A stretch of 63,833 nt of DNA, the filler included, from Pelomyxa schiedti (lineage: Eukaryota; Protista; Evosea), in the NCBI GenBank assembly GCA_020536535.1. It is 8 parts of 8 records of this genome, joined end to end, with 100 filler letters (N's around TTAATTAATTAA, not from the genome) between each part and the next. Parts side by side here need not be neighbours in the genome. Positions count along the whole stretch, not along the records: positions 28,959 to 49,241 come from JAHLWZ010000620.1; 7 more parts are not named here. The stretch is one strand, 5' to 3'. Positions 30,444 to 47,841 of the stretch are shown piece after piece. Positions within the stretch are counted from its first letter, which is position 1. Each line of letters opens with the position of its first letter. The notes beneath the pieces were generated by a model. That model searched no databases, had not been told where the DNA came from, and was given only the letters and a program-made list of their open reading frames with translations. The position numbers and the translations under genes were made by a program.

Positions 30444-31634
30444 TCATGGTGGAAGTACTTGTTGGCTGAGCTGGTCACAATTCATATAACCAATATTGGT
30501 TGAGGTAAGTGTGAAGATTGTTGCACCCGTCTCCGAATCCACAGTGTGGACTTTGCCTTTTTCCTCACTAACACAGAAGTCTCCCGTAGGCTTAAAAGTA
30601 CGATATTGCACCATTTGAGCAAATGTAGTGACGATACGGGGCCCCACAGTTGCACTTCCACGTAAGTCCCACACTGCATATCGTTTTTCAGCACCTTTCT
30701 GCTCCACGAGCAAAAATCCACCATGCATAAAGTGGTCCATGACATCCCGACATAGAACCTTCAGTTGGGAACCCTCTTGAATCTCGTACATCGTGTTGTC
30801 GGCACCCAAAGCCACAACCCTTTTGGAATCCCAGCAGCAATGGAAAGTGCAGAGGGACGGAATTCCCAGCTGCTCCGGAACAGACCTCTTCACAGTGTCC
30901 ATTGGCACCATCACACCAGTATCGAACGCCTTGGCAGCAGAAATGCGGTGGAACACACACTCCCCACGGTATGACACGCAAAAGGCCGTATCATCCACGA
31001 ATCTCACGAAAAACATGCCGCTCCGCCCAATCTCCATTCCCTCACCAGGAACCACACTCTGTGGCCCCAAAACAGTAAGAGTCTCTATGGATAGGGACCC
31101 CCGCACAACAACCTTCCACATCCTCCAGTTTTCGCAGTCGATGATCCACTGCCCCACGCACGCCACCTTGCCACGTGTGGTGCCTTTTGCGGCATCCAAC
31201 ATGCTGACGTCGGTCTTCACGCCGGTGTGTATGTTCATGACCACGCCGCAGCGACGACAAGGAGGAGGCGGTCCCACAATTGCGCTTGGCGGGACGAACA
31301 CGTGGCCCCTGCCGTCCATCTTCACGTGCCGCGCCATCGTCTCGGTCGTCGACGTGACGCCGAGGGTGCACCGCGACACGCCGACGAAGAGCGTCGTGGC
31401 GAGCGAGTTGACGCGCACGGCGACGGTGACCGCGCCGCCGCCAGACCGCAGCCCCGCGAAAAAGTGCTGCAGCAGGGGCACATCCCCGCGCGTGAGGATC
31501 GCGGCCGGGCTGCTGCGTCCGCACCGGGGTTGCGTCGAAGTCATCAGCGCCATAATCTGAGCACTCAAAGTCACGCGCGGCACCAACTCCACATCCTCAC
31601 ATACCCCAGCACCTATCATTTCATCGGGAGCCAC
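30444..31634 (-). CDS. Intronless orphan-family protein (~390 aa)
   Basis: SAQIMALMTSTQPRCGRSSPAAIL, VGVSRCTLGV, YAVWDL, C-terminal VDSETGATIFTL. Confidence 0.75.
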   Translation of the reverse strand: MAPDEMIGAGVCEDVELVPRVTLSAQIMALMTSTQPRCGRSSPAAILTRGDVPLLQHFFAGLRSGGGAVTVAVRVNSLATTLFVGVSRCTLGVTSTTETMARHVKMDGRGHVFVPPSAIVGPPPPCRRCGVVMNIHTGVKTDVSMLDAAKGTTRGKVACVGQWIIDCENWRMWKVVVRGSLSIETLTVLGPQSVVPGEGMEIGRSGMFFVRFVDDTAFCVSYRGECVFHRISAAKAFDTGVMVPMDTVKRSVPEQLGIPSLCTFHCCWDSKRVVALGADNTMYEIQEGSQLKVLCRDVMDHFMHGGFLLVEQKGAEKRYAVWDLRGSATVGPRIVTTFAQMVQYRTFKPTGDFCVSEEKGKVHTVDSETGATIFTLTSTNIGYMNCDQLSQQVLPP

Positions 31635-31726
31635 CCACCTTTTTAAGAAATTTGTTGAAAGATTTCACAAACTGGTGCTAGTTGTAACAGACCCCAAAAT
31701 CAAAGTGTTGTCTTGGGGCAAGTAGT

Positions 31727-32767
31727 TTAGAAGTGGTCATGGTAGTCTATAGACATTGCCTGCCTGCCTAGGATCTCCACGACAAGAACTGGGAATTCAG
31801 TCATGGCCTCAACCACGTCGATGTGGTGCTCAAACACACGAACCAGGAATCCCCCTTCTGCTGTGATGCTGAGCAAGGTGCTCTTCTCAGGCTGGGGAAC
31901 TTCCCTCACTGGTGCTGTGGTGTCACTGCAGTCCCACACCTGGTATGTTGAAAGGAATCCAGTGGGCTTGAAGAGCCAAACTGCAAACAGCGAGTCACTG
32001 ATCCTGGAAGCCTCCAGCCGGGTATGACTGCTGTTGATTTGCAGTGAAGCCGGCACACCCTCAGTCACATTGTAGAACTTGTGGACTCCTGGACGGGGAT
32101 CCCACACACCAGATATAAATGAACGGGCACCGGAGCGATTCCGCATTGGTAGAATCGTCAGGAGGGGGCCTGATATGAAGTCATAGCAAATATTGGTCAG
32201 GATGCAAGTCCGGCCTGTGGAGTGGGTTTTCTCGATATCCAATACTAGAAACATGACGCGGCTCTCTACGCGGGCGTTCTCCAGGCCAACAACGAGCTCG
32301 TTTGGTTTGGATTTCGTGAACATCATGCGGATTATGTTGTAGTTCGACGGGTGAGAGAAAGGCAGTTCCACACGGGATTCCACAGGCTGGAAGTCAGTCA
32401 CTCTCTCGATAGTCATGAAGTCATCTTGCACTGGACAGTCGGGCTTCCGTCCCAACCTTACGAGGACCAGCCACCTGTGATTCACAGCCTGGAACGACCA
32501 CCCAATTTCGGTGATAAGTTCCACCCGTGATCGGGCAGCCGAATTTTTCAGGTACAGGCTCATGAGGGAGGTGGCTGGGTTGATGGACTCCTCGATTTGG
32601 TGGTTGGGCGACACCCACAATGGCAATCCCGGCGACTCTTGGCGGAGCAACCTCGGCGATCTGGTGACTCCCAGGAGCAGGGGAGAAATGCCGAAGGTGA
32701 CGATCAGGGGGCATGGCGTCCAGTCCATCGTCCACGTGGAAAGGCGGATGACGAAGAACCGCGCTGT
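31727..32767 (-). CDS. 3' portion of orphan-family gene A
   Basis: Open frame below the gap, paralogous to 32868-33682; its 5' end matches 28958-29078. Confidence 0.7.
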   Translation of the reverse strand, partial: TARFFVIRLSTWTMDWTPCPLIVTFGISPLLLGVTRSPRLLRQESPGLPLWVSPNHQIEESINPATSLMSLYLKNSAARSRVELITEIGWSFQAVNHRWLVLVRLGRKPDCPVQDDFMTIERVTDFQPVESRVELPFSHPSNYNIIRMMFTKSKPNELVVGLENARVESRVMFLVLDIEKTHSTGRTCILTNICYDFISGPLLTILPMRNRSGARSFISGVWDPRPGVHKFYNVTEGVPASLQINSSHTRLEASRISDSLFAVWLFKPTGFLSTYQVWDCSDTTAPVREVPQPEKSTLLSITAEGGFLVRVFEHHIDVVEAMTEFPVLVVEILGRQAMSIDYHDHF

Positions 32768-32867
32768 NNNNNNNNNNNNNNNNNNNNNNNNNNNNNNNNN
32801 NNNNNNNNNNNNNNNNNNNNNNNNNNNNNNNNNNNNNNNNNNNNNNNNNNNNNNNNNNNNNNNNNNN

Positions 32868-33682
32868 CGGGCACCGGAGCGATTCCGCAGTGGAAGAATC
32901 GTAACGGGGGAACCAACCACGAAGTCATAGCAAAGGTTTGTCAGGACACAAGCGGCGCCGGTGGATTGGGTCTTCTCTATGTCCAGTACAATGAACATGA
33001 CTCTGCCAGCAACATTGGCTTTCTCCAGGCCAACCACGAGCTCATTGGGATTGTATGGGGCAAAAACCATGTGCATGACGCCGTAGTCTGGAGGGTGCGA
33101 GAAAGGCAGTTCCACACGGGATTCCACAGGCTGGGAATTCGTCACTCTCTCAATCGTCATGAAGTGACCTTGCATGTGAAGAAGGACAAGGACCAGCCAC
33201 CTGTGATTCGCAGCCTGGAACGACCACAGGATGTCATTGGCAAGCTCAACTCGCGAGGAATTGGCAATGTTCCTCAGATGCACGCTCTTACAATGCAGGT
33301 CGATGGACTCCTCGATCAAGTGGGTGGGGGACACCCACAATGGCGACCCCACGGCGGTGTCCTGGTCGCAGTACCTCGGGGATTTCGTGACTCCCAGGAG
33401 CAGCGGCGAAAGGCCGAAGGAAATGCACAGCGGCGAAGGCTGCCAGGACATCGACCACCCAGTCAAGTTTATGACGAAGAACCCGGCCGTATCTGTGACA
33501 AGATCCCACAATAGACGGGCGACGGTGGAGCCGTGGGTTGATAACATAGCCGGGGAGCACCTCGCCCCGCATCGGGCGTGGGTGCTCGTGGCGAACGCCA
33601 AAACAGGTGATCGAACGCCACACTCGTGCGCCACGCAGAAACCGGCTTTGTTGCCCTGGACGTTCCAAACGTCACCCATCAA
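32868..33682 (-). CDS. 5' portion of orphan-family gene B
   Basis: VRSPVLAFATSTHARCGARCSPAML...FGLSPLLLGV...NHRWLV; its 3' end matches 29873-29993. Confidence 0.7.
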
Positions 33683-33864
33683 AACGGCAGGTTTTCATTT
33701 TCTGGGAAGATGCTGAGGTTCATGGTGAGACAACTAATAATTAATTATGGTTGATTGTGGTTGGACAATAAAGCCAACCATGTTCTCTTACTATTTACTT
33801 TGAACGTTAGACTACAATATTTTTACCATTCCAAAGGTTCACGTGCTTTAGTGGGGAGGCTGTT

Positions 33865-36290
33865 TTAGCTGGAGATAAATCGCCTGTGAAAGCCCCAGTA
33901 ATATTTGTTTAGAGTAGTGCAGTCTACATAGCCACAGCCATTGGGAATCTCTTGGTTCAGGTTCCATGGAACAACTCCAGTGGTGAACAAAATGAAAATG
34001 TCTCCTGGGCCTGCTTGCTTATTGTACTCGCTTCGGTATTGGGTTGCATTGAGATTTGCTTGCCCTTTTTTGTATAGATGCACAACTTTCACTACTCTTG
34101 AGTGCTTGGTTTCTGCATCTCTTACGTAAACTTCGCCAAATGCGTCTCCACCATCAGCGGATGTAGCGTTCAGTACAAAGGATTTTAGGAAATTACCCGG
34201 CAGGCTATTGCTTCTACTAGTACCTTTTACAGCGTCAATTAAATCGAAACATGTGATTAGGTATTACCAGTAGTTTGCTGGTGCAGGGAGACGTCGGGTT
34301 CCAGTAACGTCACATAAACTTCGAGCGTTTCTGGAAGTGGGGGTGTGGTGCTGAAAGTTACTCCATCAAATAAGGTGACCAGGGGAACCCACTCGCCATG
34401 AAACATCCTGGACCTTAGACAGTAAAACATTACATTGAAACGTTCCCAATTTGTCCAGGCTGGTGCCGTTGTGTGTCCCTCACAGAAGGAGCTCAAATGT
34501 GGCCAGTCACATTCACATACTTCCTGAATCACTCGGTCGTTAGATCTCGTAGCGTTCACCCATGCCCAGGCTGGTGCATTCACCAATAATCCATTGCGCT
34601 CTGTAATCAACCCCGCGGAAATAACAGTATCTACTCGGATAGTAGTACCTGGAATCATCGTATCACGGAACGCCGTACTGTAAATATTCCTAGCCGGCGA
34701 AATCCTCTGCATGACAATGAACTTGAGCACATGGATAAACGGCAAGTCAGCCACAATATTTGGGTAGCGGATTGATAATTGCGTAACAGTGTTGCTTACA
34801 ATTGAGCGCGGATTTGTGATACCCACAGAACAGGCATCAGCTAAAGCTTCGAGGGCACGTCCATGCCCACCCATATCCGCTACCATTTGTATTTGGTCAT
34901 TAGGATTTATGGATGCGGGAAATGGAATCAAGTTCTCTGCATGACTCAAGGGTGGTGGCGAAAGATGAACTCTCCTTTGTGGGGTTGATTGAAGAAAACA
35001 ATTCAGAGGCACAAGCAGTGTTCCAGAGCAGCAAGCAATAACAAGAGGCCCCTCAGTATTATTAACCAGGCCTGCCACAGAGGCAAGGCATTGTTGCACT
35101 GGTGTTGAAAATGGAGAGGTTGTGTCCAGATTGGTTAAGGGCAACCTTGTTATGCTGTCCACCATCAAAAATACAGTCATATCTCGAAGCTTCTGACCAG
35201 AAGTCTTCGCCATGCAGGTAAAAACGTCATTGGGGGTGGGATACGCATGAAAGAGTGTTGATCTAATCCCCAACTGTATGAGCATTCTGGCTGAAATGGC
35301 TGAAAGAATGTTTGATGTATCTTGAGGTAACGATCCAAAATCAGTGCCATTCTCAAAAGATATGTTAAAAATCATGGCATTCGTAAGTCGCCTATGGAGC
35401 TCGCCTTCCTCTGGGTGTAAGGAGATGGCTTTCACACTCAGGTGAGGGAATTCTTGGAGGAGCCTGGATTTTCCTGTTCCAGGACCTGTCAATGCCAGAA
35501 AGAGTGGGTGAAATTCCTTCTGTGAACATGCAGCCATAAAGTTACGGAAGTGGTCCAGAAGGTGAAGCCCCAGGGTTTCCATTATTCCTTCAGGCTCTTG
35601 GGAAGCCCAAGTCGAACCAGTTCCAGTGCAAAACTTCTTTGGTGGCACGTATTTCAGTTCATACACTGCAAGAAGTTACTCTGTTATAGCTGCTTTTTTG
35701 GGGGACCTAGTTGAATGACTTGCCCTTCAGAAGTCAAATGTCTGACTTGATTCAAGTCTCTGTTAGCTTTGAACCATTGCGAAAAGCGGTGTAGCAACTC
35801 TAGGTTAAATCCAATAATATCGTTCACTCGGCCCATCTGCTGAGAGTGGGTACTAGATTGGGAAAATACACGCACCTCGATTATTTCCCTAGACGCCAAG
35901 CCGACAAATTTCGACGCAACAATACGGTGTGCTTCTCTATCTTCTAGTAACTGCAGTAGAACTGCTGCCTCTTTTTTCGCTGCAGCAGCCACGGTCTCCT
36001 GACCCGCGATAAGGCGCGCCGTCACTGATGCATCGAAAGCTGTCTCGAAACGTCGTTGAAGTGTGGGGTCGCCGGGGATGTGTAACTTGGCCAAACGCAC
36101 AAATTCCACACGGGACACTGGGTCACTTTCCACGTGCACTAATACGGTGTCGATACGGGTGTTGAATCTCTCATCTTCGACCATTATTTGCTCTCTTTCA
36201 CAGATGTGCCGACAATTAACGTTGGCGGCCTTTATGGCTGCGCCAAACAACTTATGTAGGTTGGTGTTGTTGTTTTCTCTTTTTATTAGG
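33865..36290 (-). CDS. Crinkler/RHS-type protein: helical N-terminal header + P-loop NTPase + C-terminal restriction-endonuclease-like domain
   Basis: Walker A GPGTGKS, FNISFENGT, Walker B VFLMVD, DMGGHGRALE, WERFN, then VLNATSADGGDAF...VHLYKK...DIFILFTT...VD...YYWGF; introns at about 35666-35706 and 34224-34267 join the three ORFs in frame; start codon not resolved. Confidence 0.72.
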
Positions 36291-39675: not shown

Positions 39676-39748
39676 CGTCGTTCCCTGCAACAGAAAAAAG
39701 GAACTTTGTTTCGCTTAAATATTGTTTTCTCGATTAATCTGATGACCT

Positions 39749-42700
39749 TCAGTGTTTTTTTGTGGTGCTGCATAAGCCCACTTTTGGGGATGATTTGCAG
39801 GCCGGGTGCACAGAAACACCGCAGGATACGCACTTGAGGCCAACAAGTCCGAACCTATGGAATTCATTGTTGGAGTTGTTCACCAGGTTGTGAAAATGAG
39901 TGAGTGATGGAGTGGGTATTGTATGATTGGGATAAGAGATAAGAGATAGAGGGCATACCCAGCAAGAACACCGTGGCAGGCACAACACCAGTGGGGTGTG
40001 CGGTAGGATTTCATCTTCCAGTCGTGAACTGTGTTGGTAGTTTGGTTGACGTGCTCATTCAGGGCTTGAACGACATCCATTGCGGCTTTGATAGTTTCTA
40101 TATCGGTGGTTCCGGGATATGTGTACCTGTAAGAATGGGTGAATGAACAAGGTAAGATAGGAGTGGGGAGAAAACCGCAGCAGGTCGCGGAGCAAGAGGG
40201 AGTATCTTGGAAGTCTTTGAACTGGGAGGAGTTACTTTAAGAAAGATGGGACATTCTCAAACCTATTGTTATCAATAAGCTGGTGAAGTACATCTTCCCA
40301 GAACCCATTGTTGTGGAGCACTTGGAATCCACAAATTTTCTGAACTCGACATTCTCTTCGTAACGTTCGGAAATATGCCTGTTTATTGCCTCGTATTGTG
40401 ACAGGAAAGGTTTGTATGATGTGAATAAGTCGGGTCTGCAGAAGAATTTGCCTAAAACATCTCCAATTGAGGCTGTCACGTGCCATTCAGAAATTCTGGG
40501 AGCGAGAAGATCAACAAATTCATTGTGTAATTCCAGTAACTGGCGTATGCCAGGGAATATGAACCTCTATTATCTTGTTAGCTGAGGAAGTACTTCAATG
40601 CACAACTTGTTCCTCCAGAGGAAGTAAGGTAACATCTGCCTCTAGAGGCTTTTGAAAAATTTCAATCAATTCGTTTAGATTTCCAACGTATTCTCTCTCA
40701 GTCTTTAGTAGTTCGCGCACAACATGGCGTTTCTCACGGGCTCGAGCAGAGATAGCAAAAACGTAGGCAACAAATCTACACGATCAGGGCGAGGGGAAAA
40801 AAATAAAAGCAAACCTTCGCTTCCTATATAAGCGCTGGATTTTGCACTATGCATTGAGAAGTTAATAGGGAGTTACGATTACGAATAACGTTACTGCAGC
40901 GTCATTGGGGTCCATCAGGCTTTTCCTCCTTTCTTCTTTTGGTTTCGGAGGCAATCGAACCTCTCCAGATTGTGAAGACGGTTTGACTGTAGGATGTTCC
41001 GGGTTTAGATTGGGCTTTTTAGATGGTGGTGCCGAGTTTCGTATAGAAACACTTGTGAAAAAAAAAGACTTGGTTCTGTGGGGTTCTGGCTTGGTATCTC
41101 CTTGTTCTGAATTGGATGATAAGTTAGCCACCCACAGTGAAAAAGGGGAAGGTGCATACTTCGTTTTCCTTCATGGGTTTGAAGGCATAATCCAACGTTA
41201 CTTGAAGTCTTGCACATAGGATGCACAGAAGCGCTGCATGATATGCATTTCAAACCAACAAGTCCAAAGCTATTTTGAAGGTTAGGATGGCCCACAGTGA
41301 GATGACCTCACCCAGCTAAAATGCCATGGCAAGAGCAACACCAATGAGGAGTCCGGAAAGATTTTTTTGTCCAATCGTGGACTGTATTAGTAGTGCGATT
41401 CACACTCTCAGTAAGAACCGAAACCATGGACATAGCCTCTTTAATGGAGGTAATATCAGGGGTTCCAGGGTATGTGTATCTGTAACATAATCAACAGATG
41501 GAAATAAAAGAGTGGTTCCATTACTTCAAGAGGTCTCGAAGCATCAAGGAATATCGAGGAAGGCGCTGCACTGCAAAAATTTGCGTGAGATGGTAGAGGC
41601 TCATTACACACCTAATGATATAAGGAGGCTCATTAAATACATCTTCCCAGAACCCATTGTTGGGGAGGATTGAGAATCAACAAATGTTCTAAAGGCTTCA
41701 TTTTGTTCATAGTGGTCACAGATGTGCCTGTTGATTGCTTCATATTGTGCGAGGAAAGGCTTGTATGATGGAAACAGGTCTTCCCGTGAGAAGAATTTAC
41801 ACAAAACATCTCCGATTGATGAGCGGACGTTCCATTCGGCAATTGTTGGTGAAAGCATCGCAGCAAAATCGCTATGAATGTCATGAAGCTGGGTGATTCC
41901 AGGAAATATAAAGTCCTTTTCCCCACAACCCAGTTTTAATTTTTTTTCACATTACTTTAACGAACCATTTCTTCAAGAGAAAGTAGCGATGAGTTTTCTT
42001 TGAGCGGTTTCTGGAAGTTTTCAATCAGTTCAGAGAGATTTCCGATGTATTCCTTTTCTGTTTTGAGCAATTCCTTTGCAACATTACGTTTTTCACGTGC
42101 TCGTGCAGAGATAGCAAAAACGTAGGCAATAAACCTTGGAGGATGAATGGGAGCTAAGAGGAAAAAGAAAAACCTGCGTTTTCGATACGCATTTTGAATT
42201 TTTCTCTAAAACTGAAGTAAGAATATGTAATCATGATGGTTAGCGTACTGCAGCCTCATTTGCATTTTCGCCGTAGTCTTGAACAGGTTCGCTATTGTTT
42301 TCAGGAGACTCTGTGCGGTCTGCTGACAATTCAAGGTTTCTAGGTGCAACTTTGGCCTCCTCACGTGCATCTGTGTGACTGGAGGAATCTGTTGGTTCTA
42401 ACTCTTGACTATTGCCATCCAGACATGGATTTTCTGTACTCAACTTATTTTTGCCCTTTCCAGTAAATAGTTGTTGCATAGGGCTTCCTAGAAGTGAGGC
42501 AGTAGAGGAAAAAAATTGCCCAACTTGATTGCCACTTTTAGACAATGCCCCAGTGAGTCGTTGTTGCTGTCTTGCAGAAATGGTCTTGGACTGAGAGGTA
42601 TTACTATGTAGAGAGGTGGCTGCCTGCTCAGTTGATCGGGACACGGGCGTATGTGAAGGTGTGTCACTACCTTGAACGGCCTTCACAGTTGTAGAAGCTG

Positions 42701-45700
42701 GTATCAGTGAGATATAAAACGCTTCGTGTATAACATACCAAAATGGCACTTTCTAATGTTGATATTGGATTTGCATAAAGGGTGTATGGATATACGGCAG
42801 GAAGCGCACTTGAGCCCTACAAGCCCAAATCTGAAATGGAGTATGAGAGTGAGTGAACCATAGTTGACGAGTACCCTGCAAGAATTCCATGACATGCACT
42901 GCACCAGTGAGGAGTCTTAAAAGTTTTTCTGTTCCAATCATGAACTGTGTTCGTTTCTTGGTTGATATTTTCAATCAAATGTTGAACCGTATCCATTGCT
43001 TCCTTTATGGTGCTAATGTCCATGGTTTCTGGGTAGGAATACCTTTTGGCAGAATATGTGTTATTCATCTCGTATTGAGTGAGGAATGGCGAACTTTAAA
43101 AGATCCCTTAGCAGAAGAGAATATCGAGGAAGACGTTGAACTGTTGTTGGGTCAGGTGGAAACAAAAACTAAAAAGGAGAAGGGAGTACCTATGGAGATT
43201 AACAGGCTCATTAAATACATCTTCCCAGAACCCATTGTTGGGGAGGATTGAGAATCAACAAATGTTCTAAAGGCTTCATTTTGTTCATAGTGGTCACAGA
43301 TGTGCCTGTTGATTGCTTCATATTGTGCGAGGAAAGGCTTGTATGATGGAAACAGGTCTTCCCGTGAGAAGAATTTACACAAAACATCTCCGATTGATGA
43401 GCGGACGTTCCATTCGGTAATGTGGGGTTCCAAGCGTTTGATAAAATGTCTGTGCATTCTTTTTATCTGCCTGATACCAGGGAAAAAAAAATCCTAGTTG
43501 CTGTTGGTAGACCTTCACTATCCCCGAGAACATACTGTGTCTTCACGGGGAAGAATAGTACTTTCTTCAAGGGGACTTTGGAATTTTTCAATCAGCTCTG
43601 TGAGATTCCCCACGTACTCTTTCTCTGTTTTGAGGAGCTCATCCACAATATGATGTTTCTCACGAGCTCGTGCAGAGATGGTAAAAACATAGGCAACAAA
43701 CCTACGTAAGAAGTAAAATTAAAGTGAATGAAAGCTATAATAACCTCCGTTTTCTGTACAGTCTTTGTATTTTCACCTGAAACAAAAAGTAAGAGTGAAT
43801 GATTTTGATAGGGATATACCGCCGCTTCTTCAGGAGACATTTTTGGATAATGGGCCGGAGCAACGCGTACTGTGTCAGAAATCACTGCCTCTTCGTTGTT
43901 GACAACTTGGGGGTCGTGTTTGTGCTTTTTGACAACAGTAGAGACTGGGGGAATATTTGTGTTTTCTTCACTGTGTTCCTTCGCTTCCATAGCTTGTTGT
44001 TGTTCTAGTGCCTGTTTTTTAGCTATAATCTGCACAAAGTGGCTTGCCGCAGAGGAAAAGAATTGTCCCATGTCAGTTCCTGAAGACTTCATGGACGCCA
44101 GGAAGTTTGGAGAGCCTATCCTGGGTGGGGGAGGAACTGGTCGTTCTTCACTAGGGGTCGGAGAGCTCTTTCTTTTCTCCATTGTGCAAATAATGATATG
44201 CCCTGAGTTCTTGCAGGTAGGGTGTATAGATGAGCGGCACACCACACATTTGAGACCAACAAGCCCAAAACTTAGGTACATAAGTATGGGTGAGTAAATA
44301 CAGCATACCCAGCAAGAACACTGTTGCAGGCACAGCACCAGTGGGGAGTTCTGAACGTTTTCTTCTTCCAGTCATGAACAGTATTGGCTGTTCGGTTTAC
44401 ACTAGATGTGAGTTCTTGCACAAGCTCCATTGCTCGCCTCAGTGACTCGATGTCAGGCGTCCCAGGATAGGAATACCTTTTTGTTTTAAGCTACTTTTTT
44501 TCTGAACATCATGAGAATGTAACTTCAAAAGATCTCGAAGCAACAAGGAGTAGCGCGGTAGTCGTTGTACTTGTAAATCATCAGAAAGTAAAAAAAAAAG
44601 GAGACAACTGGTTACCCATATTAATTAACAAACTTGAAAGATATATTTTCCCTGAGCCCAATGTGGTTGACGAACGAAGGTCAATGAACTTCTTAAAGTC
44701 TTTGTTTTGTTCATAATGAGAGTTAATGTGCCTGTCAATCGACTGATAGTGGGAAACAAAGTGGGTGTACAAAGGCAACAGATTGTCTTGTGAGAAAAAT
44801 TCACACAACAAATCCCCTATTGATGAGGGGGCACTCCACTCCTGGACCCGGGGAAGGAGCACATTCACTAAGTTGGAGTGAATCTGGTGCAGTTCCCGCA
44901 AACTCGGAAAGAGAAATTCCTTTTTTTTTTTTTTCCATTAGTTTGTGGGATGAAGGGCAGGCTTTTGACATACAATTTCTTGGGGATTGAGTAAATTAGA
45001 AAGTTCAAGAGGTTTCTGGAAATTTTCTTCTATTTCGAGAATATTTCCAACATATTCTTGCTCGGTTTTAAGCAGTTCATCAACCACATGGTGCTTTTCA
45101 CGTGCTCGAGCAGAAATGGCAAATACGTAGGCAACAAACCTGGAAATTTATCAGAGGTTAATGTAAACTGAAAATTACCTGCGCTTGCGAAAAAGTCGTT
45201 GAATTTTCACCTGCAGTAGTCATTAAAACTTTTTTAAATGTTGTATGAAGCATACTGCGGCATCATTTGGATCCAGTTGTGAATCATGGTGAACTTTTGA
45301 ATGATGTGAAGCATGCTTTGTTGACGAAATTTTGAGCTCATTTCCACTGGAGTGACTTTCACCAGATTGTTCCTGCAAATGTTCCCCACTCCCTTTGGAG
45401 TGCTTGTGCTTGTGTTTAGATCCCCTTGTTTCTTCACCTTTTTCTGGAGTTTTTGAAGTAATCTGCAATGCGGCACCCAGTCCAGGGGAAGTTGCTAGTG
45501 GCTCAAAGTTTACTTCCAAGGTCAAAGGTGATGCTGAGCGGTATGACGGGGATAAACTTGGAGATTCAGCGTGCTTGTGCTTGGGTGTGTGACTAGAGCC
45601 AGAGCCAGAGCCAGCCCCTTCAACCACAATTTCGACCGTTGAATCCTCCGTGTGCCCGTGTCGTTTGGAGCCACTTGCGCCGCTCTCACTTGTCCCCGCG

Positions 45701-46479
45701 CCGTGATCAGAAGTGCGCAGCTCTTTGGAGCTCTTGCGCTTGTGGGAACTCAGCGGGACGCTGCTCCGCTCTGGTTCCTCGCCGTCTTTGTCTTTGTGCC
45801 CTTTTTCCACTTGAGTCTCCCCGCTATGATGAGCCTTCTTGTGCTGCGAATGGTCACGCAGCTCCTCGTCGCCGCCCTTTTCGTCGTCCTCATCCCCGTG
45901 ACTCCGAGAAGGGGAATGAGAATGGGAATGGGAATGGGAATGAGACTCAGAATGAGCCTGTGAATGAGAGTGAGAGTGAGAATGCGAATGCGAGCCAGAG
46001 TGGCCTCCCTCGTCATCGCCATCATGTGCACTCTTTCCCATAATTGCCACAGCGTCGCCCTCGCCATCGGCATCGGCGCTTGCCTCTCCACCAGCACCCG
46101 AACTTTCGCCGGCGTTCTCGTGCTCGGATTTGTGATGGTGGTGGCGGCTGTGATCGTGGTGGTCGGTGCTCTCCTCGTCGCGCTCGTGGCCGTGGTGGGT
46201 CTCGTCACTGGCGCCTGTTTTGTGGGGGCTGTCACTTCTCGTCGGGGCGTCCTTGTCCCCGCCGCTTGGAGAATGCGGCTGGGGTTGCTTCCACGACAAT
46301 TGGATACCCCAAGAGGAGGACTTGCCGCCGCCGGAGTCTTCGTCGTTTTCTGGCGCCGCCCTGGATGCCCCTTCGGCCCTCTCCTCTACGTCTTCATTAT
46401 GGGAGTGCTCGTCGTGGCTGTGGTGATGGTGATGGTGGCTGCCGCTGGAACTACTCCGTAGTTGGTCCCGTCCACTCAT
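39749..46479 (-). CDS. Dbl-family RhoGEF with His/Ser-rich N-terminus and four tandem IQ-DH-C1 modules, no PH domains; multi-exon
   Basis: Four repeats of AAVKIQ..F/YRKR (IQ-like), ELLKTE.EYVGNL...F.KPL, SIGD.L..FF, YL.SLLI..VQRLPRY.LLLRDLL (DH), each followed by HDW...F.TPHWC.AC..LAGFGLVGLKC..C...HP.C (C1); stop at 39749. Confidence 0.88.
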
Positions 46480-46625: not shown

Positions 46626-47841
46626 CTAGGAATTTGATGGTCCATTGACAGGCCTATTTGCAGCAATCCAGGCGATAGCAAGAGTAACAGTATCGTCATC
46701 CACAAGCCTACCAGAGACCTGCGTGACCTCCCTCACAGCCATGGACGCCTCAGCCGCATCGTATCCCATAAGCACCAAAGTGTCGCTCGCCTCCTGTATT
46801 TTAGATGACTGGGTCCCCACAAAGTCGCTAGCAAAGAACTCGCTGCGGGCCCCGCGCAGGTCCACAAGCAGCTCCCACACGATGTTGCGCTCCCGCTCAT
46901 ACCCCACGTCCGTGACCAGGCTGTACAGCTCGCCCGCGTGCTTGGTGATGGTGCTGAAGTGGTTGTTGCGGAACAGCACGACCACCTCGTCCTCCGCGAT
47001 GGCGTGCCTCAGGGCCCCCAGCCCCGCGTTCGTGAGCTGGTTCCCCGTGTCCTGCAGGAACGCGTGGATCGCGTGCGTGAGCGGCTGGTCGCTCTCCGTC
47101 ACCAGCCGGCTGACGACGTCGTTGTACCGCTGGCCCGCGAGCGCCCTCGCGAGCTCGGCGCCGGCCGACGGGTCCACGATCCAGCCGTGGACCAGCCGCA
47201 CCCCGCTGAGCCCAAAGACGTCGATCTGGCCGCCGGGCTCGAAGTCGTCGATCGAGGTGAAGCTGAAGTTGACGTCTAGGCCGCCCTGGAGCTTCGGGAG
47301 CTGGTCCGCGATGGCGGACACGCGCATCACGGCCTCCTCGACCTCGGCCCCTGCGCCGCCGGCTCCTTTCAGGCTCGCCTGCTGAAGCATCTTGTTCATC
47401 AGAGCCTCACACATTTGATCGGCGGTCACGATCTGAGAAACTCCTTCGCGCGGTTGCAGGGTGATTTCGCCTCGAACAAGCAGGCAGTTGCATATTGCGA
47501 TCAGTGGGCACGGGCCATTTTCGTTTTGAAGTATGATGTGGGTGCGCCGCTCTCCAATGTCGATTCTTTTTACATGGTAGTCGCCTGCTTTCTCCGCCAT
47601 ATATACACCAGTTGGCGCGTCTTCAATCTGAGTGACACCAAGGCCTAATAAAAGGGTCAGAGTCGGGGGGCAAAAGAGGGGACTCCAGTAATGAGAAATG
47701 GCAGAGCATGAATACCTAGCAACGCTTCGTAGTCCCCGTCCAACGCTGTGGCACCTTGCTCACCATCAACATGGAACCACAGTTTGCCTTCCTTAACACC
47801 AATTACAGTAGCATTCCCCCTTGGAGTGGAAACTCGATAAC
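46626..47841 (-). CDS. MINDY-1/2 (DUF544) deubiquitinase with an N-terminal beta-rich exon and C-terminal UBA-like helices
   Basis: Catalytic QNENGPCPLIAICN and LFRNNHFSTI, LVHGW, LVTDVGY; tail LVLMGYDAAEASMAV; upstream exon RVSTPRGNATVIGVKEGKLWFHVDG splices in frame via intron at about 47644-47716; true start further upstream, unresolved. Confidence 0.9.

Follow-up and report, generated by a model that had tools for sequence, protein, structure and literature searches.

The window analyzed here, a stretch of 63,833 nucleotides (nt), filler included, joined from eight parts of the genome assembly GCA_020536535.1 of Pelomyxa schiedti, carries on its minus strand a gene, Pelo_7868, which encodes four tandem copies of a cassette that consists of an IQ-like segment, a complete DH domain of the Dbl family of Rho guanine nucleotide exchange factors (RhoGEFs) and a C1 zinc finger, with no PH domain. 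The gene belongs to the 20,283-base contig JAHLWZ010000620.1 (positions 28,959 to 49,241 of the window). Pelomyxa schiedti is an anaerobic free-living archamoeba whose genome and transcriptomes were obtained from micromanipulated single cells and whose genes contain 7.4 introns on average; the genome paper makes no mention of RhoGEF or GTPase (PMC8887013).

In the six-frame translation of the minus strand between 46479 and 39749, conserved peptide blocks, including RFVAYVF..ARAREK, LLKTE..EYVGN, QRLPRYSLLLRDLL, HDW..HWC..C and FGLVGLKC, appear in a fourfold series interrupted by short stretches with GT..AG ends. The spliced model, in which 17 introns were taken from RNA and 9 were placed by homology between the modules, has a reading frame open over 1837 codons and is identical, residue for residue, to P0068 (GenBank KAH3760313.1), which was deposited under the title "hypothetical protein Pelo_7868 [Pelomyxa schiedti]"; the 9 homology-placed introns agree with the GenBank annotation. 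The components of the gene, with lengths and protein positions in amino acids (aa), are as follows.

39749-46479, minus strand: whole coding region of Pelo_7868, 27 exons and 26 GT-AG introns of 38-104 nt, 1837 aa
45256-46479, minus strand: exon 1, a 402-aa N-terminal region and the first residues of module 1
44186-45273, minus strand: module 1, aa 403-675
45261-45136, minus strand: IQ-like segment of module 1, aa 407-420
45087-44383, minus strand: DH domain of module 1, aa 437-622
44376-44186, minus strand: C1 domain of module 1, aa 625-675
43838-44185, minus strand: linker 1, 116 aa
42746-43837, minus strand: module 2, aa 792-1064 (IQ-like 796-809, DH 826-1011, C1 1014-1064)
42267-42745, minus strand: linker 2, 146 aa
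41185-42266, minus strand: module 3, aa 1211-1484 (IQ-like 1215-1228, DH 1245-1431, C1 1434-1484)
40913-41184, minus strand: linker 3, 73 aa
39770-40912, minus strand: module 4, aa 1558-1831; a 6-aa tail then leads to the stop codon (39749-39751)
45179-45210, 43745-43776, 42174-42205 and 40815-40846, minus strand: IQ micro-exons of 32 nt, encoding the IQ-like core x-KIQ-xx-[FY]-RKR-

The 402-aa N-terminal region is a low-complexity sequence rich in Ser, His, Gly, Glu and Asp, with SHSHSH runs, and a Pfam scan detected no family in the product of exon 1. The GC content changes abruptly inside the gene, from approximately 59% in exon 1 to 41-44% in the module region (approximately 42% over the rest of the gene).

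A Pfam scan of the complete protein yielded four RhoGEF matches (PF00621, E 6.2e-147), the best of which spans positions 1-180 of the 180-position profile, and four C1_1 matches (PF00130, E 1.2e-33). When single exons were scanned, successive pieces of the RhoGEF profile (1-38, 36-135 and 138-167 of 180) were recovered, followed by the first 23 positions of C1_1, and in module 4 (P0001) DH is matched over residues 36-218 and C1 over residues 225-268. In every module, the C1 domain starts 4-6 residues past the last DH helix, in the place usually taken by PH, as the first-pass annotation of the window had proposed. The canonical DH-PH tandem is thus replaced by a direct succession of DH and C1. 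Mutagenesis of Dbs and Tiam1 has established the importance of the Thr-Glu glutamate of conserved region 1 (CR1), the QR-x-x-RY motif of CR3 and the asparagine of the last helix. The motifs that contact the GTPase, namely LLKTE with the CR1 glutamate, QRLPRYSL and the last-helix asparagine within [VI]N, are present in all four modules and align with ECT2; among solved structures, the sequences closest to the DH domain are those of ECT2 (6e-20) and then Vav1 (4e-18).

The lack of a PH domain, also claimed in the first-pass annotation, is borne out by the absence of a match to any Pfam PH family in P0068 at E up to 10; Pfam matches to CH, SH2 or SH3 were not found either. The linkers consist of 77-84% polar or small residues with few hydrophobics. 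A cryptic PH domain in the linkers was considered and rejected: there was no Pfam match, a sequence search of the PDB with linkers 1 and 2 returned no meaningful match, and the 73 aa of linker 3 are too few for such a domain.

Each of the four C1 domains retains the full set of eight zinc ligands (general C1 ligand pattern H-x12-C-x2-C-x13/14-C-x2-C-x4-H-x2-C-x7-C), together with Pro11, Gly23, Phe/Tyr8, Trp13, Val/Ile20 and Phe24, and chimaerins (E about 1e-7) and protein kinase C (PKC) provide the closest C1 sequences among solved structures. Upstream of each DH domain, splicing of the 32-nt micro-exon yields the same sequence pattern, AA-x-KIQ-xx-[FY]-RKRRF, in all four modules, so that the earlier impression of an IQ-like segment least conserved in module 2 did not hold; on individual modules, the Pfam IQ profile matches weakly in modules 1 and 2 (15.0 and 14.9 bits, profile positions 2-13 only) and in modules 3 and 4 not at all.

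An AlphaFold2 model of module 4, built from a 55-row alignment of the family and other DH domains, reached a predicted local distance difference test score (pLDDT) of 93.4 and a predicted template modeling score (pTM) of 0.81; it superseded a single-sequence model with a pLDDT of 37.9, which was unusable. Residues 3-64 of the model are predicted to form one unbroken helix, which comprises the IQ-like segment and DH helix 1, so that the IQ-like segment appears to prolong DH helix 1 at its N-terminal end. The last DH helix is predicted at residues 199-221, with the strands of C1 starting from residue 227. The DH part of the model superposes on p115-RhoGEF, PDZ-RhoGEF, intersectin and ECT2 with Z scores of 21-24 and root-mean-square deviations (rmsd) of about 1.8-2.2 A (for p115-RhoGEF, Z 23.6 and rmsd 1.9 A over 197 residues), and Foldseek also recovered such structures. 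Docking of the IQ-DH part and C1 as separate chains gave a score of 0.00 in a run without alignment and without controls, a result that has no bearing either way.

The four modules are 61-74% identical to each other in pairwise comparisons, module 1 being the most divergent (61-63% to the others). Each contains six introns at the same residue offset and phase (7/0, 17/2, 73-74/0, 174-175/1, 189-190/2 and 245-246/2), which bears out the shared intron positions noted in the first-pass annotation, whose module ranges are also close to the coordinates given here. When the modules were placed in a maximum-likelihood tree together with five single-cassette relatives, all four grouped in one clade (support 97/100) and therefore the repeat arose by duplication within the Pelo_7868 lineage. 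The motif GQFFSS[AT]AS occurs in both linker 1 and linker 2 (aa 717-731 and 1128-1142; about 44062 and 42556), and linker 3 contains a degenerate version, SFFFTSVS (aa 1507-1518, about 41118), with FF[SF][ST] common to all linkers; thus, the duplicated unit included the linker. The proportion of synonymous differences (pS) between modules is 0.79-0.88, that is, saturated (0.58 for modules 2 and 3), and the proportion of non-synonymous differences (pN) is 0.17-0.25, from which it follows that the duplications are old and that each copy has been kept by selection.

These observations bear on the possibility that only some of the DH domains are active, with the others being pseudo-GEFs or scaffold parts, or that the protein is mainly a multivalent adaptor. 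Multi-domain repeats often diverge in function, and module 1 has indeed diverged the most, but this explanation appears unlikely given that every module retains a full-length Pfam DH domain, the CR1 glutamate, QRLPRY, the last-helix asparagine and all zinc ligands, and that non-synonymous divergence is low in every module pair.

Transcription of the gene was analyzed using RNA from three single-cell runs, produced in the same study as the genome and kept as contigs, which were compared with positions 39700-45300. The RNA supports 17 of the 26 introns, 16 by spliced joints, which read CT..AC on the plus strand and hence GT..AG on the minus strand, and one, the C1 intron of module 3, by a loose contig end. 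In run X1, one contig (record 6) extends from the DH and C1 exons of module 1 into linker 1, to 44074; another (record 5) links linker 1, from 44030, with the DH domain of module 2 via the 32-nt IQ micro-exon; a third (record 4) joins the C1 exons of module 2, across the intron 42698-42738, to 366 nt of linker 2; and a further one connects the C1 domain of module 3, across the intron 41107-41159, with 111 nt of linker 3. The last of these overlaps a 1001-nt contig of run X2 (record 7) that contains linker 3 and the whole of module 4. All six introns of module 4 are represented in RNA contigs from the three runs. Two of the four IQ micro-exons, that of module 2 among them, have RNA-supported flanking joints; the two introns on the IQ side of module 3 were inferred, the RNA contigs leaving 42018-42331 uncovered. 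The transcript-derived open reading frame (ORF) P0001 (281 aa) is identical to module 4 except for one residue. At position 40349, one RNA contig of run X2 has T where the genome has A, which gives Asp for Val in P0001; the mismatch may be an allele, an error or editing. Independent DNA contigs (run X4) cover 39700-41655, 41810-43233 and 43388-45300.

The obvious alternative to a single gene is a tandem array of four single-cassette genes, or of mostly single-cassette isoforms transcribed from internal promoters, that was merged by annotation or contig assembly. The RNA contigs on the gene do not exceed 1001 nt, and none extends over more than a single complete module; module 4 is represented in all three runs vs. 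mostly one run for the upstream modules; P0001 begins at a Met just upstream of module 4; and single-cassette genes occur in the same genome. However, the linkers contain no in-frame stop, the spliced contigs link the C1 exons of modules 1, 2 and 3 to the following linkers and linker 1 to the IQ and DH exons of module 2, and the contig that joins module 3 to linker 3 overlaps that of module 4. The 1001-nt contig from which P0001 derives is partial, with its 5' end inside linker 3, so that the Met of P0001 is simply the first that the truncated sequence contains, and the heavier coverage of the 3' end would fit poly-A-primed single-cell libraries. Because spliced RNA contigs bridge the module boundaries, the frame is open and DNA contigs span the junctions, four separate genes are very unlikely, and the single gene of the first-pass annotation, identical to the GenBank model, is retained.

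Modules 2 and 3 share, in the large DH exon, an exact repeat:

43204-43417 = 41626-41839 (modules 2 and 3), minus strand: identical tract of 214 nt

The longest exact match in any other pair of modules is at most 25 nt, and an independent DNA contig that consists of exactly this tract has a depth of 26.8 vs. 13.4 for its neighbors; the tract is probably the result of recent gene conversion. That the fourfold repeat is an artefact of the assembly of amplified single-cell DNA (chimeras or mis-joined repeats) is highly unlikely: although the genome was obtained from whole-genome-amplified single cells (PMC8887013) and the independent Logan contigs of the DNA are interrupted at the 214-nt repeat, the modules differ by 26-39% in protein sequence and are synonymously saturated, and so do not represent a single sequence that was collapsed or duplicated, the DNA contigs listed above span the junctions, the double depth of the tract is as expected for two true copies, and the RNA contigs confirm unique junctions between linkers and modules.

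The large DH exon was used to look for relatives of the cassette by exhaustive profile search among 1.84 billion representatives (E<=0.001, no length limit), which yielded 67 matches, and the best of these carry the IQ-DH-C1 cassette once. The single-cassette relatives include:

Pelo_14177 (P0003, KAH3744441.1) and Pelo_3319, from Pelomyxa schiedti
P013787 (with SH3) and P023275, from Mastigella eilhardi
P0069, an environmental relative of 551 aa with the architecture C1-IQ-DH-C1-SH3

In the ENA metagenome assembly ERZ21831265, two contigs (L001:2467-3862 and L003:2374-3318) contain IQ-like, DH, C1 and SH3 exons in this order, which shows that the cassette family is also present in an unsampled environmental eukaryote. 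Word-based searches detected no further multi-cassette protein among proteins of 1010-3215 aa with module 4 as the query (E<=1e-5), and only Pelo_14177, with no multi-cassette protein, among proteins of 155-492 aa with P0001 as the query; proteins of 493-1009 aa were covered by the exhaustive profile search. A search of the protein atlas and a fold search of the ESM Atlas, which provide leads only, returned clusters of generic DH or DH-PH type but none of DH-C1 type. In the literature, we found no paper under the phrase 'DH-C1' together with RhoGEF, and no study of the single-cassette archamoebal relatives. The IQ-DH-C1 cassette is thus a small archamoebal family, the fourfold form of which is seen only in Pelo_7868; of the suspicion that such an architecture might already be common in Amoebozoa, only the part that concerns the single cassette, which recurs in Archamoebae, is borne out. 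The match of Pelo_14177 to the RhoGEF profile starts only at position 64, and the stretch that separates the CR1 block from the 'DW..SQIG' block is missing from the protein; its annotation probably missed an exon.

The single-cassette archamoebal proteins, which are 28-43% identical to module 4, resemble Pelo_7868 in having the IQ-like segment before DH, QRLPRY, a C1 domain approximately 48-53 residues after QRLPRY, and no PH domain. They differ in possessing one cassette rather than four, and some contain a C-terminal SH3 domain, which is absent in Pelo_7868, or an N-terminal C1 domain. Among better characterized proteins, Vav (CH-Ac-DH-PH-C1-SH3-SH2-SH3) is likewise a Dbl GEF with an atypical, phorbol-unresponsive C1 that works with DH, and the C1 domain of Vav1 also aligns in the sequence match to the cassette. 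The PH-C1 unit of Vav1 packs against the C-terminal helix of DH, which it braces, and promotes exchange (PMC2427238). Unlike Pelo_7868, Vav has a PH domain between DH and C1, a single DH domain, and CH, SH2 and SH3 domains; according to a review, it originated in choanozoans (PMC6562523). The domain set that defines the Vav family, a DH-PH-C1 core together with CH, SH2 and SH3, is not found in Pelo_7868.

More than one DH domain per polypeptide is also present in Trio and Kalirin, which consist of two DH-PH units together with spectrin, SH3, Ig and kinase parts. Gains of kinase, Ig and FN domains have been mentioned for these proteins (PMC5499878). A predicted protein of Saccoglossus kowalevskii (XP_077861980.1, P0005) contains four DH domains along with PH domains, one of the sea star Patiria miniata (XP_038061452.1, P0050) has seven RhoGEF matches and no PH, and Mastigamoeba P007516 has two DH domains; IQ and C1 are absent in all three. 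Given that the Saccoglossus and Patiria predicted proteins exceed two DH domains, 'at most two DH domains' is no rule, and the statement in the first-pass annotation that multi-DH proteins have two was too narrow. For the poly-DH architectures of the Patiria and Saccoglossus type, which belong to deuterostomes (Saccoglossus is a hemichordate), no mention was found in the reviews consulted.

The placement of IQ motifs directly N-terminal of DH has a counterpart in Dictyostelium GxcDD, where the IQ motifs occupy residues 390-417 and 432-461 and the DH domain residues 464-637 (PMC1914345). Unlike the cassette, GxcDD contains CH, three PH and ArfGAP domains and a single DH, and no C1. In RasGRF1, too, the IQ motif immediately precedes DH, and the protein additionally contains PH domains and a Cdc25 domain. 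A C1 domain is combined with the catalytic domain of a Rho regulator, as in Pelo_7868, in GEF-H1 (ARHGEF2), AKAP-Lbc and p190RhoGEF (C1-DH-PH) and in the chimaerins (C1-RhoGAP). In the former three, C1 is N-terminal of DH and the PH domain still follows DH; the chimaerins differ from Pelo_7868 in being GTPase-activating proteins rather than GEFs. According to a survey of Dbl GEFs, DH-only proteins that lack a PH domain are numerous in Amoebozoa, and the accessory domains include IQ and C1 (PMC5499878), so that the premise that DH nearly always occurs with PH was too narrow as well.

Upstream of Pelo_7868, also on the minus strand, lies an intronless ORF (46626-47600) for a 324-aa deubiquitinase of the MINDY family (PF04424, E 2e-73) with a GC content of approximately 59%, which ends 147 nt before the RhoGEF start codon. 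Several long ORFs in the region 30444-35666, on the minus strand, and others have no Pfam family at E up to 0.001:

30444-31634: ORF of 396 aa without a Pfam match (E<=0.001)
31727-33682: ORF of 651 aa without a Pfam match (E<=0.001)
34257-35666: ORF of 469 aa without a Pfam match (E<=0.001)
35684-36250: ORF of 188 aa without a Pfam match (E<=0.001)

These ORFs around 30444-36250 are probably exons of unannotated or lineage-specific genes.

Taken together, the observations are best explained by a single gene that probably encodes a Dbl-family Rho/Rac GEF with four tandem IQ-like-DH-C1 cassettes, which emerged by intragenic duplication and have been maintained by purifying selection. The observations of the first-pass annotation on the whole, that is, four modules, no PH domain, and one gene, thus stand, with spliced RNA and GenBank identity added; of its interpretation, the single gene, the four cassettes, the missing PH and the atypical C1 were upheld, and the background on PH-less and multi-DH proteins required broadening.

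Several points weigh against this reading. An IQ motif proper should score above the gathering threshold of Pfam and display the pattern IQxxxRGxxxR; the whole-protein score of IQ (PF00612) is 18.4 bits vs. the gathering score of 20.3, and IQxx[FY]RK is present with Val or Ile at residue +11, so that the second basic residue of the complete motif is absent. The IQ-like helix of the first-pass annotation is therefore upheld as a segment before DH in all four modules, with an IQ assignment that is below the Pfam threshold. Typical C1 domains that respond to diacylglycerol or phorbol, as summarized by the PKC-delta C1B consensus, have Pro11, Gly23 and Gln27 and hydrophobic residues at 8, 13, 20, 22 and 24. 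In all four modules, position 27 is Val, in agreement with the earlier observation that Pro11 and Gly23 are kept with Val at the Gln27 position, and position 22 is Ala, so none of the modules conforms to the consensus at these two positions; furthermore, x8 instead of x7 precedes the last Cys. When read against PKC C1 mutagenesis, these sequences point to atypical C1 domains, and given Val27, Ala22 and the x8 spacing, lipid binding by C1 is uncertain. In a rigid alignment to Vav1, DH alone (residues 27-224) superposes and accordingly the placement of C1 is not simply Vav-like; the relative placement of C1 and DH comes from one predicted model. Finally, all of the RNA evidence consists of single-cell contigs that stem from the same sample and study, the gene is not spanned from end to end by any one of them, and they leave 42018-42331, from linker 2 to the DH domain of module 3, uncovered. 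For these reasons, and because the RNA was compared only up to 45300, internal promoters or shorter isoforms of Pelo_7868 may exist.

Under the reading of Pelo_7868 as a single fourfold GEF, the protein comprises a disordered His/Ser-rich N-terminus followed by four cassettes of approximately 273 aa each, strung on disordered linkers of 73-146 aa. Each cassette consists of an IQ-like basic helix that is predicted to run unbroken into DH helix 1, a complete DH domain, and an atypical C1 in the usual place of PH. The cassette, which also occurs in single-copy genes of Archamoebae, was multiplied by intragenic tandem duplication, all four copies being kept by purifying selection. Each DH domain is probably catalytically competent, judging from the conserved GTPase-contacting residues. 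The C1 domain, probably not a classical diacylglycerol or phorbol sensor, likely stabilizes the last DH helix in place of PH and/or docks the cassette on a membrane or a partner, and calmodulin or an EF-hand light chain might plausibly bind the IQ-like basic extension of helix 1, near the catalytic face. With flexible linkers between them, the four cassettes would provide avidity or clustered GTPase activation at the membrane.

As a tentative extension of this scheme, which is possible rather than probable, the IQ-DH-C1 cassette could be a self-sufficient, PH-independent exchange unit of archamoebal origin in which an atypical C1 performs both jobs of PH, namely support of the last DH helix and recruitment of the protein to a membrane or a partner. 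The active site would then be gated by a calmodulin-type protein that binds the helical extension of DH helix 1, and quadruplication of the unit on flexible linkers would allow a single polypeptide to activate Rho/Rac in clusters, or to do so only at sites where several weak contacts of C1 occur together.

The sequence of Pelo_7868 is already public as a "hypothetical protein", so that the gain is an annotation and a testable hypothesis rather than a new kind of system: Pelo_7868 is an unusual but not revolutionary form of a well-known family of signaling enzymes. Dbl GEFs are usually explained via the DH-PH pair, whereas here C1 is fixed on the last DH helix in a lineage-specific family, and the cassette has been multiplied four times in one protein with all copies under selection. 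If the cassettes are active, they would provide a natural test of the need for PH, separating helix stabilization from membrane targeting, and of whether multivalency tunes Rho signaling in a giant amoeboid cell whose locomotion relies on cytoplasmic streaming.

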